Sequence record: NC_042013.1
Strand: one strand, 5' to 3'
DNA length: 64,000 nucleotides
Of the stretch, positions 4,333 to 48,924 are shown piece by piece. Position 1 is the stretch's first letter. Each line of letters starts with the position of its first letter. The translations under genes were made by a program, and so were the position numbers. The notes below the pieces were generated by a model. The model made no database searches. It was not told the origin of the DNA and was given only the letters and a program-made list of their open reading frames with translations.

Positions 4333-4407
4333 GGGAGTGTGGCTGACTGGTAAAGCAGATGCCTTCAAAACATTGAGATGCGGGTTCGATTCCTGTCACT
4401 CCCACCA
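4333..4407 (+). tRNA. tRNA with UCA anticodon (opal-suppressor / Trp-like, atypical)
   Basis: Acceptor GGGAGTG/CACTCCC, D arm, loop CT-TCA-AA (TCA 4365-4367), T loop TTCGATT, encoded CCA; C31xA39 mismatch. Confidence 0.85.
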
Positions 4408-10372: not shown

Positions 10373-11161
10373 ATGGGCGTGAATTGGTATATTGATAAAA
10401 ATATTATAGATGAAAAATACGGAACCTCAAAACTGATCGAGGCTATTGATCTTCTTAAGCAAAATCCAATAGTAGTTGAGAAGCCATATACCAGCATTAA
10501 GACAGATAATGATTCACCCGGTATCATTTATGGAACCGTGCAATTTTGTAGTACATTTGGTTCAAACGTTTGTCCCGGCGTATTTGGTTACTTTGACATG
10601 GATGTAACGCGATACTATCCACGATACGGTGATTATTTGTTGAATTCAGAATACATTTGTCTTCCATACGGTTCATTGCGTCATAGTAAGAATATGATTT
10701 TTGATGTGTTTGGAGACGAAATTTTTATCAGACCAAACTCTGGAAAGAAAGTATTTACAGGGTTTACTATACATAGAGATGATTTCGATTTTGAAATCAA
10801 AGCACTTCAACACACCTCCCATATATATCTGGATACTCTTTGTGTTATCTCTTCGTCAAAAGTGTTCGGTAAAGAGTATCGTTTTTTTGTAAGCGACGGT
10901 GATATTGTAACGTATTCGTCTTATTCTTGGAACAAAGACGAGCCATACACATATGATGCACCCAAAGAAATGCTGGATACTGTAATTGAAATAGCTAACA
11001 ATGATTTTAGACCGGCTGATATATTTGTTGTTGATATGACAATGTATCAAGGAAAACCAAAAATAATTGAAATAAATTCGGCGTCATCATCTGGTTTATA
11101 TGGTTGCGACATTTTTGAATTTGTTAATGCTATGGGTAAATCAGCTATCCGCGAATATTGA
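10373..11161 (+). CDS. ATP-grasp domain protein (DUF4343/R2K-like)
   Basis: FIRPNSGKK, EYRFFV, FVVDM, IIEINSASSSGLY. Confidence 0.8.
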   Translation: MGVNWYIDKNIIDEKYGTSKLIEAIDLLKQNPIVVEKPYTSIKTDNDSPGIIYGTVQFCSTFGSNVCPGVFGYFDMDVTRYYPRYGDYLLNSEYICLPYGSLRHSKNMIFDVFGDEIFIRPNSGKKVFTGFTIHRDDFDFEIKALQHTSHIYLDTLCVISSSKVFGKEYRFFVSDGDIVTYSSYSWNKDEPYTYDAPKEMLDTVIEIANNDFRPADIFVVDMTMYQGKPKIIEINSASSSGLYGCDIFEFVNAMGKSAIREY

Positions 11162-11162
11162 G

Positions 11163-11212
11163 TTGACATTATTCCAAATTCAGTTTAAGCTTTTTTCAAA
11201 TGAAAGGAGCTT
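11163..11212 (+). promoter_or_regulatory. sigma70 promoter overlapping an SD-sequestering hairpin
   Basis: TTGACA-17-TAAGCT; 11187-11197 pairs with 11202-11212 (GAAAGGAGCTT), two G-U pairs. Confidence 0.7.
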
Positions 11213-11217
11213 TACGA

Positions 11218-11718
11218 ATGGTAACAAAATTTTCTGGAAAAATTTCTGGTCACTTGTTTGAAAAGTATAACGGCGACACTGTTCGTATTGAATCTTGGTA
11301 TTCGCGATTTACCAAAGTTCGCCGTGCCAAATTGTTGTTCCTTTCTGGTTGTCAGGGACACCGTTGTGCGATTTGTTCTGTAAAGACGTGGCATCCATCA
11401 TTTGGCGAACGTGGCCCGCATAAGCGTCGTGCTACCCTTGAACATGTTATTGCACAAGCAAATGGTGGTGGAGAACATCTAAGCAATCTTCTTATGACTT
11501 GTTTGGATTGCAATTCCCGCCGAGGTGATGGTGATATTTTTCTGTACGAATCTGTACTTAGATTTCTACCCCGCGAGAAGACTCGTTCTCCTGAACAAAT
11601 TGCAAAGAAACAAAATCGAAATGATCTGTTTATTTTGAACACTGCATATATGTGCGCGACGAATAAAAATATTTCGGTTATGATCGATTATTTTATTGAC
11701 CGGTTACGCACAGTTTGA
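11218..11718 (+). CDS. HNH endonuclease
   Basis: CAIC...TLEHVIAQANGG...NLLMTCLDCNSRRG. Confidence 0.85.
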   Translation: MVTKFSGKISGHLFEKYNGDTVRIESWYSRFTKVRRAKLLFLSGCQGHRCAICSVKTWHPSFGERGPHKRRATLEHVIAQANGGGEHLSNLLMTCLDCNSRRGDGDIFLYESVLRFLPREKTRSPEQIAKKQNRNDLFILNTAYMCATNKNISVMIDYFIDRLRTV

Positions 11719-11998: not shown

Positions 11999-12396
11999 CA
12001 TGGATGAGTTTTATATGGTAACTGGAAGTGTGGTCCATCCTTAAATGTCTTCCAATCTCCACCCCATTCAATAGGGACGTGAAGTTCTTTTGCTGCCTGC
12101 TTCATAGCATCTGAAATCATTTTGTAATATTTCATATCCCAACTAACAGATGTTCCAATATACGCGACAACGTCAACGGCTTTAGAGAAGCCATCTTTTC
12201 CCGGTATATGACGTGAATTCAAGGTGGTTGTTGCACCTTCAGCCAATAGTTTCTTCTGTTCGGTTAACGTTCTCACGCCGCACGTAATACCGAAATCGAC
12301 CTCAGTGATTTGAATAGCTCTTTTAACCACTTTTACTAAATCAGGATGAACACCTGAAAGACGGTCAAGGCTTCGTTTGCTTAGATTGTATCCCAT
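11998..12396 (-). CDS. endolysin, peptidase M15 (L-Ala-D-Glu peptidase, T5-like)
   Basis: SRH...AVD and DGPHFQL zinc motifs. Confidence 0.9.
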   Translation of the reverse strand: MGYNLSKRSLDRLSGVHPDLVKVVKRAIQITEVDFGITCGVRTLTEQKKLLAEGATTTLNSRHIPGKDGFSKAVDVVAYIGTSVSWDMKYYKMISDAMKQAAKELHVPIEWGGDWKTFKDGPHFQLPYKTHP

Positions 12397-12399
12397 GAG

Positions 12400-12436
12400 A
12401 AATACCTCCGAAAAAGTTAATCTTCGAAGGTATTTA
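12400..12436 (-). promoter_or_regulatory. late promoter embedded in SD-occluding hairpin of the endolysin
   Basis: TAAATA at 12431-12436; 13-bp stem 12400-12412/12423-12435 covers GGAGG. Confidence 0.8.
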
Positions 12437-12459
12437 TTGGATATTTATATATTTTTGAT

Positions 12460-12786
12460 TTAGGCCAGAATGTCCTTTGCCATAACGAACTGTGCCGTCA
12501 CAATGTCGTCTTCGTCATCAAACACCATATTAACAACATAGTGCTTGTCAAGAATGAGACCCTCATCCTTAACGTCCTTGAACGAAATCTGTTCACCCTC
12601 ATTAACTGGCGGAACGAACATAGAACGCAGAGCAACGCGGACCAGCTTATAATTAACAATTTCACGGTCCTTGAGGAGTTTAACATATTCCTTTCGAAGG
12701 AAAATATTTTCTGCAAGATCAACACCGCGATGCTTTTCGTCAGTAGTAAACCAACGGTCAAACGGGATACGAAGGGCATTTTCCAT
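12460..12786 (-). CDS. hypothetical protein
   Basis: SD AAGGAGAG. Confidence 0.65.
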   Translation of the reverse strand: MENALRIPFDRWFTTDEKHRGVDLAENIFLRKEYVKLLKDREIVNYKLVRVALRSMFVPPVNEGEQISFKDVKDEGLILDKHYVVNMVFDDEDDIVTAQFVMAKDILA

Positions 12787-12826
12787 AATATTCTCTCCTT
12801 TTCAATTTCAACAATGCAACTTAACT

Positions 12827-13405
12827 TTAGTTTAGTTCGATGTCAATATATTCTAGTTCATTCAGGCAAATAAATCTGGTTCCATTGATGATGTAATCAA
12901 ACGACTTATGATAATGACCAAAGAACCAAACTTTAGGCTGATGCTCTTCAAAAAGCGCCTGTAACGTTTGCTGCGTGCGCGTGTGGCGATGATCGAAGTA
13001 CCCAAGCAAATACGCCTGCGCTTCAATAGGAGCATCGTGTGTGAACATATATGACGGCTTGGTATCGATATATTTTCCACCAATGTCATACAATTCAATG
13101 TTGGAGAGTTCTTCATCCTCCCACCAATCAACGTCCTTAGTTCTCATATGAATATCGGTTGAACGTGCGCCGCCAATAAAGAACATACCATTCTCAAAAT
13201 GACCATCTGGAATCCAGTTTGGATGTTCTTTGCACTTTGCTGGATCATCGTGATTGCCGCGAATAAATCGATCTTTTTTGTCCATTGGGGGGATATCGCC
13301 AAACCCTACGCCAAAATCACCAACTTGAATTGTTGGATGATTTACGTTGATAACTTCTCGATATTTTTCGTCTTTGCCATGACGATCACCAATTACCCGT
13401 AGCAT
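12827..13405 (-). CDS. calcineurin-like metallophosphoesterase
   Basis: GDRHG, VGDFG, RGNHD, THDAP, FGHYH. Confidence 0.9.
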   Translation of the reverse strand: MLRVIGDRHGKDEKYREVINVNHPTIQVGDFGVGFGDIPPMDKKDRFIRGNHDDPAKCKEHPNWIPDGHFENGMFFIGGARSTDIHMRTKDVDWWEDEELSNIELYDIGGKYIDTKPSYMFTHDAPIEAQAYLLGYFDHRHTRTQQTLQALFEEHQPKVWFFGHYHKSFDYIINGTRFICLNELEYIDIELN

Positions 13406-13536
13406 AATCAAACTCCATTTGAATTAATCATTCTGGTAGTTTATTTGTATTTACAAAAATGTCAACAGATAAATACCGTTACCTTGAACTAAACCCTCAA
13501 GATAATTTCAACATCCAATTAAGTTAGGATAACACT

Positions 13537-14271
13537 ATGACTACTATCTCACGCTACGACTGTCTCTTGACGACTATAAATTACGGCAAATCACCAACGG
13601 TTGATGATTTAATTACCGATTCTGAAAAAATTTATCAATATCTTAATCAGTTAGGCGAAACTCGCTCCATTAGAGATTTTTATCAATCTCTGCCCTCTAT
13701 TACCCATTATAAATTTCAAGAAGAAACCCTTACGCAGATAGATGGTGACTATCATAAAAATTATCTAATCACAGGACGCCAAGTTGGATCGTCTACTATC
13801 GGTGCAATATTTGCATTGCATCGCGCCGTTAACAAAGGTGATAACGTTTATATCGTATGCGCAAATGCCGCAGCTTGTAGTAACTTGGAAAGCTTGGTGA
13901 GTAATTTATATTCTCACATTTCAGAAAGTTACAACGGACATTCTATTAATCATTATAAGGGAGGCGGAAACATACATTTTGTTAGTTCGTCACATAGTAT
14001 ACCAAATGGTTCGGTGATTATTATAAACGATCTTACAAATGTGAGATATGCTGATTTTTCGGCAATGTCTGATTCAATCAATAAGTCTAAGAAATTTCTT
14101 GCTTATGGATGCTTGTCAAAGGATGATAACAACCCAATCAATCAACGTTTAACGTGCGGCGAAAAGGACACCTTTGATAAAATCCTACCTTCTCACTTAA
14201 GAGTTGATACCTCCAAGATCAGAAATACGGTTGATCCTGAAACTTTCAAAAGAGAATACTGTGAATTTTAA
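13537..14271 (+). CDS. degenerate terminase-large-subunit ATPase paralogue (no nuclease domain)
   Basis: RQVGSSTIGAIFALH vs T4 gp17 RQLGKTTVVAIFLAH; YKFQ Q-motif; ends TFKREYCEF. Confidence 0.7.
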   Translation: MTTISRYDCLLTTINYGKSPTVDDLITDSEKIYQYLNQLGETRSIRDFYQSLPSITHYKFQEETLTQIDGDYHKNYLITGRQVGSSTIGAIFALHRAVNKGDNVYIVCANAAACSNLESLVSNLYSHISESYNGHSINHYKGGGNIHFVSSSHSIPNGSVIIINDLTNVRYADFSAMSDSINKSKKFLAYGCLSKDDNNPINQRLTCGEKDTFDKILPSHLRVDTSKIRNTVDPETFKREYCEF

Positions 14272-14277
14272 AAATAA

Positions 14278-14299
14278 AAAGCCCCTTTTTAGGGGCTTT
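14278..14299. terminator. bidirectional terminator
   Basis: AAAGCCCCT-TTTT-AGGGGCTTT. Confidence 0.8.
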
Positions 14300-14693
14300 G
14301 TTTTGTCTTATTATGGATATTTTTCCAGTTCAAAATAACATCTTTGTATACCGCCGAATGAGAAAATGTCCATTCGTACATATCGTCTTGTTTTTCAAAG
14401 CCAGTCTCGTATCGAAGGCGCATAATGGTATATTGTTTTGCTTGTGCTTCCAGCCAAGCCGTAAATGAATCATAATCAGTTACGTCACGAGAAATTTTAT
14501 ATGAATCAGTTGGTAATTCGCCATTTAGCAATTCCGCAACAGTGTACATTCCACGTGCAATCAATGCCTCATTAATATCAATCTCAGATGCCTCGGTAAA
14601 AACTTTTTCAGCATCAGTTACGTTTGGATCAGTTGTACCATCTACATAGACCCATGCACCATCATTTTTATATCGCCATCCAACGTGAATCAT
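14289..14693 (-). CDS. hypothetical protein
   Basis: SD GAGGA. Confidence 0.65.
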   Translation of the reverse strand: MIHVGWRYKNDGAWVYVDGTTDPNVTDAEKVFTEASEIDINEALIARGMYTVAELLNGELPTDSYKISRDVTDYDSFTAWLEAQAKQYTIMRLRYETGFEKQDDMYEWTFSHSAVYKDVILNWKNIHNKTKQSP

Positions 14694-14702
14694 TTTAAAT
14701 CC

Positions 14703-15335
14703 TCAGCAACTTACAGTGCGCTTTTCAAAATCTTCTTGCGCGAATTTTTTGGCTTGTTCGTAAGATGTATAATATTCTTGAAAATAGATAGATTGACTAT
14801 CCTCAAGTTGTAAAATAACATCAAATTTGTTCTTACTCAAATGACGTACAACATACGTCATAAAAGAATTCGGGCGCGCTCGAATATCATGACCGGGTTC
14901 ACCACCATCGCTGTCCCATACCAATTCTTTTGATAGTGACTTGATAATTTCGTCCTTAATAATCACGAACTCAGCAATCGTTTCAGCATTGCGAACTCGC
15001 TCGATGATGTTTTCGTCTGGATTATATCTCTTTATGAATTTTTTTGCTTTAATATCATAAAACTCACCGTTCAACATTTTGAAAATGTAACCTTTACGAA
15101 TATCAATATAGCCGTCTATACCAGAAACAATAAGATCATCGTCTTCATTAATAGAAATTACGATATAATACTTATCATCGATGACCATAGCATTTTCATA
15201 AGGGGCAACCTCAATATACCCGAGAATAATATCCTCATTTGGGACGTTCGTAAAAAACAAATCCCATTCCCTTTTAGAATATCGAATACCGGCTGCAAGT
15301 TTCGAAGATTCATCAAATTCACGAATTAATGTCAT
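14703..15335 (-). CDS. hypothetical protein (paralogue of 15335..15667 plus extra C-term)
   Basis: GY(I/V)EVAPYE shared. Confidence 0.7.
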   Translation of the reverse strand: MTLIREFDESSKLAAGIRYSKREWDLFFTNVPNEDIILGYIEVAPYENAMVIDDKYYIVISINEDDDLIVSGIDGYIDIRKGYIFKMLNGEFYDIKAKKFIKRYNPDENIIERVRNAETIAEFVIIKDEIIKSLSKELVWDSDGGEPGHDIRARPNSFMTYVVRHLSKNKFDVILQLEDSQSIYFQEYYTSYEQAKKFAQEDFEKRTVSC

Positions 15336-15667
15336 TATTGTCCCTCACTGGTATCGGCAACGAAGAGTTCGTTCTCTACATCAAAAATTTCACCTTGAAG
15401 CATTCTAAATACAATATCATTGCTAATATTAATGACGCCATTGGCATCTGCGGCATATAGACTACAAGAGTTATTATGTGATAAAACAGTTACTACGATA
15501 TAATGTTTGCCATCAACGCGTAATGCAAATTCATAAGGTGCGACCTCGACGTACCCTATGATATAATCATCTCCGGTAACTCCAAAAAAAATTTCATATG
15601 ACTCTTTCGACAATGATAACAATGCTTGAATCTTTATACTGTCATCAAATTGTCGAACAGTTACCAT
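15335..15667 (-). CDS. hypothetical protein
   Basis: GYVEVAPYE shared with neighbour. Confidence 0.7.
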   Translation of the reverse strand: MVTVRQFDDSIKIQALLSLSKESYEIFFGVTGDDYIIGYVEVAPYEFALRVDGKHYIVVTVLSHNNSCSLYAADANGVINISNDIVFRMLQGEIFDVENELFVADTSEGQ

Positions 15668-20426: not shown

Positions 20427-20502
20427 TGGAGGCGCGGGTCAGGGTCGAACTGACATAAATCTCCTTTGCAGGGAGCTACCTAACCATTCGGTGCACCGCG
20501 CC
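20427..20502 (-). tRNA. tRNA-Cys (GCA)
   Basis: GGCGCGG/CCGCGCC acceptor, loop CT-GCA-AA, U73, encoded CCA. Confidence 0.95.
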
Positions 20503-20511
20503 AATGAAGGT

Positions 20512-20553
20512 AATGTACTATATAACGACATTACCTGTCAACTACTATTTATA
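20512..20553 (-). promoter_or_regulatory. tandem late (TATAAATA) and sigma70 (TTGACA-18-TACATT) promoters
   Basis: TATAAATA 20546-20553; TTGACA 20536-20541; TACATT 20512-20517. Confidence 0.65.
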
Positions 20554-20857
20554 AAAATTTTACAAGAGAACCAGATGGTGGATTAGGCTCGACGTCATTT
20601 CCTGCCATATTAATGCAGTTGACCATATGGGCAATGCAAGAAAGAATAGCAATGTGGCGCTTATAAGCCTCGCTGGCGGTGTTTCTATTAAAGGTACGTG
20701 GTAGCTTCTTCAGTGACTGCAATCGATCAAGAGTAGCCTCTACGTCAAGCATACGGCGTTTTTTAGAACGCTTACGGCTTTCTTGTTCTTCTTGTGCTCG
20801 AAATTCCAGAGTACGGCGTCTTGCTTCGAGTAGTGCTTGGATATTTTCTACTTCCAT
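20549..20857 (-). CDS. hypothetical basic protein
   Basis: Start set at MEVENIQ; SD AGGA. Confidence 0.55.
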   Translation of the reverse strand: MEVENIQALLEARRRTLEFRAQEEQESRKRSKKRRMLDVEATLDRLQSLKKLPRTFNRNTASEAYKRHIAILSCIAHMVNCINMAGNDVEPNPPSGSLVKFL

Positions 20858-20873
20858 TATTATCTTCCTTGTT

Positions 20874-21218
20874 TCAAATGTTGATGTATTTTGCCAAATC
20901 AGAACTGATCTTTTCAATATTTTCTTTTGTTTTTTCTTTATTTTTTATGTAATCGTTTTGGCGTGTTGTGTACATGGCGTCTGATTTCTTTGCAAAATCA
21001 CGATGTGACGATTGACATACCGACCACGCAACATTCGCCTCACGCGCATTCTGTAACGCGTACTTCTCGATTAGCTTTGCCATTTCGGTTGCAAAGAAAA
21101 ATGCACGCAAACCACCGGGATAATCATCCGGCATTCGTTTTTCTAGATCGGTCATCTTATCTAATTCACTTGGATGAATGGACCACATCCTATAAGCCAA
21201 GTCGTCTACGTCCTTCAT
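20874..21218 (-). CDS. hypothetical protein
   Basis: Operon packing. Confidence 0.55.
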   Translation of the reverse strand: MKDVDDLAYRMWSIHPSELDKMTDLEKRMPDDYPGGLRAFFFATEMAKLIEKYALQNAREANVAWSVCQSSHRDFAKKSDAMYTTRQNDYIKNKEKTKENIEKISSDLAKYINI

Positions 21219-48090: not shown

Positions 48091-48924
48091 TTATAGGTGC
48101 CAATCATCCATTGCACGTGCATGTGACGGGCGATGCCCATCTCTCATCAACAATTCGTCTCGAATAAGCTGATTTTTCTTTTCCTCGTGCAAAATTCGAA
48201 GAAATGAGTTTTTCATCGTTGACGTATAATAAGCAAACGGGTTTTGACTTTTGCTTTCTTCGAATTTCAAACCAGCGTGTGAAAGTTGAATAAGAGCTTG
48301 TGCTTGCATTTCTTCAAGGTAGCTATAACCTCTCCAGTTTGGTTTCTGTCCATACTTGTCAACAAGTTTAAGATACATCGCACCCAAACGATCAGTTGTA
48401 CGCCCGTGTGTTACACAAAATTCACCATTCTCTAATGCATTTCGCCAATGCGATCTACCGACCTCACGCAGCACCAGTTCATTTGCATCAAAATCTTCGG
48501 TGTTTTCAATGTCAGTTTCGATAACATAATGCTTGTATGGAGCGAAATTTAGTGTATGATGGAAATCCTTTTCCTTTTTGGGATTGCCACGAAGTTCGTG
48601 TTCCTCGAGGCGAGGAATATGTTCATATGTCATAATACGAACGACCATACCATTAATCGGTATCGTTTTAGGATCGGTTGCCTCAAAGTCTGGAATGACT
48701 TTAACTTTGTGGGTTTTCTTATATTCCTCGCGTATTTTACGATCAAGACGCATAGCCTTGGTTACGCGAGTTGCATTGATGAGTTCTGTGGTTAATAACG
48801 ACCTGTCTGCAATGATTATATCATAATTTGCATATTGCGGTTCGGTGTAGTATGAATACGTGTTCTTGCTTAGATGAATCTCTTTGAGCAATTCACGGTT
48901 GGATAGAAAATTTACTTTTGCCAT
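48091..48924 (-). CDS. gp55: late-transcription sigma factor
   Basis: NWRGYSY.EEM, KF...KSQNPFAYYT...F.R.L.EEKK; upstream of 47-46 as in T4. Confidence 0.9.
   Translation of the reverse strand: MAKVNFLSNRELLKEIHLSKNTYSYYTEPQYANYDIIIADRSLLTTELINATRVTKAMRLDRKIREEYKKTHKVKVIPDFEATDPKTIPINGMVVRIMTYEHIPRLEEHELRGNPKKEKDFHHTLNFAPYKHYVIETDIENTEDFDANELVLREVGRSHWRNALENGEFCVTHGRTTDRLGAMYLKLVDKYGQKPNWRGYSYLEEMQAQALIQLSHAGLKFEESKSQNPFAYYTSTMKNSFLRILHEEKKNQLIRDELLMRDGHRPSHARAMDDWHL

Follow-up and report, generated by a model that had tools for sequence, protein, structure and literature searches.

Agrobacterium jumbo phage Atu_ph07 (NC_042013.1, 490,380 bp) carries a free-standing gene, gp627, whose product is, as judged from its sequence, a pseudo-ATPase: a homologue of the large terminase (TerL) that is devoid of the catalytic residues and is maintained by purifying selection. 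The protein appears to be lineage-specific and to descend from the ATPase part of a large terminase of the T4 type. It is not a terminase, since four of the five defining features of a TerL that were looked for are absent, namely the Walker A lysine, the Walker B aspartate together with the catalytic glutamate, the nuclease domain, and a location in the packaging module; the one found is homology to the Terminase_6N ATPase domain, in sequence and in fold. The likeliest role, which is put forward tentatively, would be to assist or regulate packaging or head assembly without catalysis. The packaging motors of viruses serve as models for ring ATPases, and among the targets of bacterial pattern-recognition immunity the terminase is a main one.

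Resemblance of gp627 to the large terminase

The window analysed is the final 64 kb of the Atu_ph07 record, and a window coordinate is the record coordinate minus 426,380. The gene (YP_009612292.1, 244 aa, computed mass 27,454 Da) is labelled as a hypothetical protein in RefSeq and bears the automatic name 'Terminase large subunit' in its BFVD/UniProt entry. That its resemblance to the TerL ATPase domain is more than chance is confirmed by profile comparison. When an alignment of the three known family members was compared by hhalign with an alignment of 25 intein-free TerLs (~530 aa) from the phage's own TerL clade, aa 56-172 matched TerL 55-181 locally with a probability of 88% and E 3e-6, and extended or forced global runs placed gp627 1-244 collinear with TerL 1-278, the entire ATPase domain (E 9e-7 to 9e-6). 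The identity to T4-type TerL ATPase domains is about 20%. Single searches gave less: the Pfam Terminase_6N match (E 7.6e-4, 19.6 bits) is under the gathering score of 22, PHROGs returned weak TerL families only, NCBIfam and PADLOC yielded nothing relevant, and the profile of the three members had no match among PDB sequences up to E 10.

The evidence for the fold comes mainly from the ESM Atlas, by model and search, and from Foldseek. The ESM Atlas model of this exact protein has a pTM of 0.75 and a feature score of 0.96, and the structures closest to it belong to ten clusters of Terminase_6N (TM 0.69-0.75 across aa ~30-244); likewise, the most divergent family member, P0003, has a feature score of 0.98 to the same Terminase_6N families. 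An AF2 model built from the three-sequence alignment was poor (pLDDT 55, pTM 0.60). The Foldseek comparison with terminase structures, which had been proposed as a check on the terminase-like fold, came out in its favour even though it was run with this weak model: TerL structures stood near the top of the PDB matches (E ~1e-3, TM ~0.41), among them 8dgc_E (the Avs3-bound PhiV-1 terminase), 6z6d (HK97), 4znk (P74-26), and 2o0j (T4).

Loss of the catalytic residues

Table 1. Features of the gp627 locus, in window coordinates
Feature	Position	Strand	Basis or remark
Sigma-70-like promoter TTGACA-16-TAAACT toward divergent gp626 (metallophosphoesterase)	13438..13465	-	consensus match only, 10/12
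GATAAATAC, T4-late-promoter-like motif	13468..13476	+	61 nt upstream of the gp627 ATG; 7-mer enrichment
Shine-Dalgarno-like AGGA, 7 nt before the ATG	13526..13529	+	read from sequence; conserved in orthologous loci L004 and L006
gp627 CDS, putative TerL ATPase-domain-only pseudo-ATPase	13537..14271	+	244 aa, 27.45 kDa; ORF, annotation, homology, dN/dS, peptide
Q-motif HYKFQ (aa 57-61), adenine-binding, kept	13705..13719	+	aligns with TerL YPFQ, T4 DYQ143
P-loop GRQVGSST (aa 80-87), without the Walker A Lys	13774..13797	+	aligns with TerL ARQMGKTT, T4 SRQLGKTT
Degenerate Walker B IIINDL (aa 161-166)	14017..14034	+	aligns with TerL LLYLDEF, T4 IYIDEC
YGC (aa 190-192) at the TerL coupling-motif position (T4 TTT285-287)	14104..14112	+	MAFFT alignment
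FKREYCEF (aa 237-244), motif closing the TerL ATPase domain	14245..14268	+	alignment with TerL and T4; stop codon 14269-14271 directly 3'
Bidirectional intrinsic-terminator-like hairpin between convergent gp627 and gp628	14278..14299	.	9-bp stem, 5 G-C pairs, T-runs on both strands

Residue equivalences were taken from an alignment of gp627 with gp17 from the T4 record and the TerLs of the phage's own clade. In this alignment gp627 retains the Q-motif and, in the P-loop, the backbone GRQxG..T: Q61 corresponds to Q143 of gp17 and R81 to the P-loop arginine R162, and H57, Y58, F60, and Q61 are invariant across all three family members. Lost are the Walker A lysine (S85 for K166), the Walker B aspartate (N164 for D255), the catalytic glutamate (D165 for E256), and the coupling motif TTT (Y190-G191-C192 for T285-T287), the last in a region outside the confident local hhalign match that was reached by the extended or forced-global runs only. 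Also missing is a loop of about ten residues in which the TerLs have a conserved Arg-Gly (AGRGLS). The lysine is absent from both family lineages, being replaced with Ser in gp627 and with Gly in P0003 (GRQVGGTT), and the Walker B site reads ND in gp627 as against EE in P0003 (IIVEEA).

The terminal FKREYCEF aligns with TerL KFxREFECEF (~position 270-278 of 531) and with T4 FRQEHTAAF, so that gp627 ends at about TerL position 278 of 531 and has no RNase-H-like nuclease domain (Terminase_6C). A tblastn search with the TerL nuclease domain found one place in the Atu_ph07 genome, in gp109. The motifs named in the original prediction are all present as described, i.e., a Q-motif YKFQ (aa 58-61), RQVGSST with Lys changed to Ser (aa 81-87), and a degenerate Walker B; the nuclease domain is lacking as it had stated, and its description of a catalytically dead mini-terminase is well supported by homology, predicted fold, and the mutational knowledge of T4.

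Packaging by T4 gp17 is abolished by Asp/Glu swaps in these signatures, conservative as they are (PMC9958956). We infer that gp627 is incapable of ATP hydrolysis, and it may still hold nucleotide or phosphate. The nuclease-free T4 gp17 ATPase domain engineered with D255E/E256D (2O0H/2O0J) has an altered Walker B/catalytic pair and no hydrolysis, and gp627 looks like its natural counterpart. However, ATP binding persists in the Asp-Glu to Glu-Asp mutant (PMC9958956), which retains Lys166 and binds ATP tightly, whereas in gp627 that lysine is lost too, making nucleotide binding uncertain. The very strong constraint on the invariant GRQxG..T and Q-motif, and the two acidic residues at the Walker B position of P0003, would suit an ATPase that is still active at an unconventional site where R81 or other residues stand in for the lysine. 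This is very improbable, since the T4 signatures tolerate so little while gp627 is altered at four catalytic elements at once and misses the RG loop; moreover, the change of ND to EE between the lineages argues against a conserved catalytic carboxylate.

Purifying selection and narrow distribution

The gp627 family comprises three sequences only. P0002 is an 86%-identical orthologue in the same gene order; it belongs to a phage closely related to Atu_ph07 and represented by seven contigs out of several metagenomic samples, and its reading frame is intact there. P0003 has 283 aa, is 38% identical, and also keeps an intact frame on a contig that otherwise shares almost nothing with Atu_ph07. Between gp627 and the metagenomic orthologue (L004) dN/dS is 0.068 (dN 0.107, dS 1.57) and is similar to or below that of neighbouring genes; synonymous sites are almost saturated along the whole gene (pS about 0.66-0.72). 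Hence, gp627 is a real gene under strong purifying selection.

The constraint is uneven along the protein. It is strongest in the block holding the degenerate P-loop and in the C-terminal block matching the end of the ATPase domain: dN/dS is 0.02 in aa 28-100 (Q-motif, degenerate P-loop, and first helix), 0.13 in aa 101-185, and 0.009 in aa 186-244, which span the last strand and the C-terminal block, match TerL subdomain II by position, and are 98% identical to the orthologue while pS is 0.66. Recent recombination does not explain the conserved blocks, as synonymous sites are near saturation throughout. Two N-terminal helices without a TerL counterpart, ISRYDxLxTxI and VDxLIxDxEKxY, are kept across the 38% identity.

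Degenerate catalytic motifs, a missing nuclease domain, and a very narrow distribution are also what a decaying, functionless remnant of a duplicated or captured terminase gene would display. Such a remnant is essentially excluded by the selection data, that is, by the dN/dS of 0.07 at near-saturated synonymous sites; the frame is moreover intact in Atu_ph07, in the seven-contig relative, and in the 38%-identical homologue, the promoter region, ribosome-binding site, and terminator are conserved, and a peptide has been detected.

Among 1.84 billion representatives, only three protein clusters belong to the family. Scans with family patterns found no member in IMG/VR besides Atu_ph07 itself and none in JGI metagenome contigs or GTDB genomes, and tblastn of gp627 and P0003 against 50,697 phage records returned Atu_ph07 itself and chance-level TerL matches only. 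Similarly, the search found no homologue in Phosso, a Sinorhizobium jumbo phage with a TerL nuclease domain from the same clade. A tblastn match in LR745208 was rejected as spurious, as it sits in an RtcB-like ORF. With so narrow a distribution the motor does not need gp627, which is an accessory factor and not a core motor part, and in so tiny a family any role is lineage-specific rather than general.

Expression signals

The gene is the sole plus-strand gene among minus-strand genes, and its 125-nt upstream intergenic region is conserved. Over the 100 nt preceding the ATG, the two close relatives are ~96% identical, as against 78.5% for coding DNA; the putative gp626 promoter sits in the conserved part of this region. 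Downstream, the hairpin region is 90-93% conserved relative to L004 and the adjoining coding sequence 65-78%. In the 5' UTR no fold reaches significance (z = -0.16). The original prediction that gp627 forms a transcription unit of its own is plausible in view of the lone plus-strand gene, the conserved upstream region, and the hairpin; the public RNA-labelled runs, which contain only 170-250-nt fragments of the gp627 region, are uninformative on transcription.

The T4 late promoter is TATAAATA, and the motif upstream of gp627 is similar. In the upstream intergenic regions of 127 kb of the genome ATAAATA is the most enriched 7-mer (14 occurrences against 1.06 expected), and the orthologous loci L004 and L006 carry GATAAATAC unchanged. 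The form [G/T]ATAAATAC lies 34-63 nt before the starts of the tail sheath gene gp132, the tail tube gene gp127, and the virion protein gene gp696, and 41-52 nt before the endolysin gene gp624; ATAAATA lies 37 nt before the baseplate hub gene gp686. Atu_ph07 also encodes a gp55-like late sigma factor, gp694. Since GATAAATAC also precedes tail sheath, tail tube, virion protein, and endolysin genes, transcription of gp627 probably starts late, at a promoter of the T4 late type, along with that of structural and lysis genes, a call that draws on the statistics of motif enrichment and not on mapped transcripts.

One peptide of ORF 627 (27.46 kDa, 3.69% coverage) was reported from gel slice 8 of a PEG-purified virion preparation (Attai et al., 2018), and this slice is the peak slice of other 25-30 kDa proteins. 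The peptide supports translation. It proves at most expression and gives no virion location, because metabolic enzymes were present in the same preparation.

Proposed role in packaging or head assembly

With the catalytic residues all lost, gp627 would work by binding and not by burning ATP. The protein would occupy, or compete for, a surface used by the ATPase domain of the true TerL, the candidates being the portal, the small terminase, a neighbouring TerL subunit, and DNA, and would in this way be a non-catalytic accessory or regulator of head filling. The concentration of constraint on the Q-motif/P-loop and C-terminal blocks points to retention for what gp627 binds. A role in packaging or the head is favoured because gp627 keeps the entire contour of the domain through which TerL contacts its partners and because the protein is probably made alongside proheads and tails. 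The original prediction had offered a dominant-negative modulator of the packaging motor as one option; a motor poison made permanently would be costly, so any dominant-negative action would require regulation.

The location speaks against a packaging role. The gene stands at record position 439.9 kb, 360 kb from the packaging genes and not adjacent to the portal gene, gp198, or to gp111, the candidate gene of the small terminase (TerS); unrelated genes surround it, ORFans and an endolysin, and the neighbours examined give no clue to function. This isolation among ORFans would agree with an exapted P-loop scaffold having a role outside packaging, either as a nucleotide- or nucleic-acid-binding late protein or as an accessory protein like T4 vs.8, and so would the conserved family-specific N-terminal helices and the fact that T4, too, has a free-standing TerL-ATPase-like protein outside its packaging genes. 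Exaptation of this kind is quite possible, though less likely than a packaging role: the full collinearity with TerL, including the terminal motif, and the extreme C-terminal constraint suggest that TerL-type contacts are kept, homology between gp627 and vs.8 is not demonstrable beyond the P-loop (hhalign probability 3.9%), and the Walker motifs of vs.8 are intact. On the exaptation reading, the loss of the catalytic and the ATP-holding residues might serve simply to take away a feature readable by host sensors.

A bolder form of the binding model is rather unlikely. On this view gp627 would be a 'pseudo-terminase', the first found in nature: a TerL ATPase domain devoid of catalysis and acting as a late competitive mimic, which gates the phage's motor at the portal or TerS or intercepts TerL-targeting proteins. 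If this were true, what it intercepts might be sensors of the host, or else motors belonging to rival phages or to satellites.

Comparison with known terminase-like proteins and immune sensors

The closest known domain is that of TerL itself. The T4 gp17 ATPase domain (residues ~90-356; PF03237) and that of the phage's own TerL have the Q-motif, the P-loop backbone, the strand order, and the predicted fold in common with gp627, while gp627 is without Lys166, Asp255, Glu256, TTT, the RG loop, and the nuclease domain. In architecture the nearest analogue is T4 vs.8 (Evans et al., 2026; PMC13601566), a TerL-ATPase-like protein of 219 aa that is uncharacterised. Like gp627 it is short, free-standing, TerL-like in the ATPase part only, and, within the genome of a T4-superfamily phage, encoded at a distance from the packaging genes; taken as a short ATPase-domain-only protein of TerL-like fold outside the packaging genes, gp627 belongs with it. 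Unlike gp627, vs.8 has an intact Walker A (GGRQSGKS) and Walker B (IIDE), and it is toxic with EcAvs2 (PMC13601566). The hhalign match between the gp627 family and vs.8 covers the P-loop stretch only; the single sequence of vs.8, too, matches the TerL profile only weakly (5.8%). Another example is Ksap2 of phage Bas60, which is restricted to Stephanstirmvirinae (Bechon et al., 2024; PMC11564622). It is likewise a small phage protein with weak structural similarity to the TerL ATPase domain, but it is an activator of KpAvs2; the comparison with gp627 is by description and not by sequence.

These activators bear on the other option of the original prediction, an immune decoy that would soak up Avs1-3 and Upx without triggering them and so shield the real terminase from detection. 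A preserved TerL-like fold with the catalytic residues gone would suit a decoy, gp627 is a rare lineage-specific accessory gene like many counter-defence genes, and it is probably expressed simultaneously with TerL. Avs2 binds the terminase via the ATPase domain, which on its own suffices to activate Upx (PMC13601566). Nevertheless, the decoy is improbable and is disfavoured because Avs2 and Avs3 read the active site and the bound ATP, and because the known mini-terminases activate Avs2. [quoted passage not shown] Both T4 vs.8 (PMC13601566) and Bas60 Ksap2 (PMC11564622), small TerL-ATPase-like proteins, activate Avs2 rather than silence it. Upx activation does not require terminase catalysis and might therefore be set off by a dead copy as well (PMC13601566), and since binding normally drives Avs tetramerisation a silent binder would need an extra, unexplained feature. 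The PADLOC search of gp627 gave no match, and no terminase decoy is reported in the literature searched. We infer that the packaging modulator fits better than the decoy, given the late-promoter-like motif, the constrained blocks, and the peptide from the virion preparation.

As a predicted naturally dead, selected, free-standing paralogue of the terminase ATPase, gp627 would be a ready-made probe of TerL surfaces that are important apart from catalysis, such as those for portal docking, TerS contact, subunit contacts, and sensor recognition. Together with T4 vs.8 and Ksap2 it suggests a recurrent, unstudied class of free-standing TerL-ATPase-like accessory proteins of phages. Atu_ph07 is cultured and its host is tractable, which leaves the role of gp627 open to bench tests.

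The true TerL of Atu_ph07 and its split intein

The true TerL is encoded by gp110 and gp109, two translationally coupled ORFs at record 79.5-81.7 kb. Two arrangements that would join gp627 to a terminase were rejected: it is not a part of the split TerL, as gp110 supplies the true N-extein, and it is not paired with a separate nuclease-domain ORF, as the genome has one nuclease domain only. Since there is no second such domain, gp627 is not half of a second terminase. In the Sinorhizobium phage AP-J-162 'three terminases' have been reported (PMC11242549).

The TerL of Atu_ph07 is interrupted in the P-loop by a split intein, an atypical one such as those of GOS-TerL and AceL-TerL (PMC11766414). 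The gp110 product holds the N-terminal 81 residues up to YDYQ...CGRQLGK and then 42 further residues; that of gp109 begins with 148 residues ending in ...SHN, followed by TTVAAAYLL... and the remainder of the P-loop. Relatives of this TerL occur in an intein-free state of about 530 aa, with a full intein and a LAGLIDADG domain at the same GK|TT site (about 860 aa), and in many split forms of 590-606 aa.

A split intein in the phage terminase

The large terminase (TerL) of Agrobacterium phage Atu_ph07 is encoded by two genes, gp110 and gp109, which the original Atu_ph07 paper described merely as two gp17 homologues. The P-loop of this protein is interrupted by an atypical split intein. The product of gp110 consists of an N-extein of 81 aa, ending in CGRQLGK, followed by an IntN of 42 aa whose first residue is Ser, while gp109 supplies an IntC of 148 aa, ending in SHN, and a C-extein of 454 aa that starts with TT. 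The predicted spliced TerL would have 535 aa, matching its intein-free relatives. Translational coupling of the two genes is suggested because the stop codon of gp110 overlaps an alternative start of gp109 (TGATG).

Among the TerL relatives collected (P0004-P0123, from related, mostly jumbo-phage contigs), the GK|TT site is found in three states: without an intein (~530 aa), with a full intein carrying a LAGLIDADG domain (~855-870 aa), and in split forms (~590-606 aa), in which the start of IntC is conserved (..LLWxLDxDHRxKHE). Taken together, the three states resemble a natural evolutionary series for split inteins.

The annotation of gp627 is inconsistent, being a hypothetical protein in RefSeq and GenBank and 'Terminase large subunit' in BFVD/UniProt (A0A2L0V0U8). 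The latter name is misleading, since gp627 lacks both the catalytic residues and the nuclease domain.

Regulatory DNA and a possible gene exchange

The motif [G/T]ATAAATA(C) is strongly enriched 5' of genes. It marks the structural genes for sheath, tube, baseplate hub, and gp696, as well as the endolysin gene for lysis, and is probably the late promoter recognised by the gp55-like sigma factor gp694. In four regions compared with the metagenomic relative, intergenic DNA (promoters, 5' UTRs, and a terminator) is 90-98% identical, against 63-90% for the flanking coding DNA; therefore, the regulatory DNA is under visible constraint.

The genes gp642 and gp643 share 99% and 95% DNA identity, respectively, with the relative's locus (L004), versus 70-88% for the genes around them, where synonymous sites are saturated, which suggests from sequence comparison that a segment beside a tRNA gene was recently exchanged.

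Features of the window and of the terminase locus (L003, the stretch of NC_042013.1 holding the terminase)
Feature	Position	Strand	Remark
tRNA, anticodon TCA	window 4333-4407	+	ARAGORN, label SeC
gp621, R2K-type ATP-grasp	window 10373-11161		adjoins gp622
gp622, free-standing HNH endonuclease	window 11200-11718	+	1.8 kb upstream of gp627
gp627	window 13537-14271
gp642 + gp643	window 20549-21218	-	adjoin tRNA-Cys, 20427-20502
gp694	window 48091-48924	-
gp110 + gp109	NC_042013.1 79548-81739 = L003 17549-19740	-	outside window
[G/T]ATAAATA(C)	window 12437-12455 (-), 42817 (+), 49488 (+), 13468 (+)
[G/T]ATAAATA(C)	L003 30975, 37449 (-)		outside window
Intergenic regions compared	window 12346-12495, 12736-12885, 13426-13575, 14236-14324

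Other genes and occurrence

The tRNA with anticodon TCA would read UGA and could be of the suppressor type. TGA serves as a stop codon in Atu_ph07, gp110 being one gene that ends with it. Both gp621 and gp622 are conserved in the relative. Near-identical pieces of window 12800-15400 occur in public runs labelled as biofilm, honey, marine sediment, landfill, tobacco, and wastewater metagenomes, and Atu_ph07-like phages seem to be widespread.
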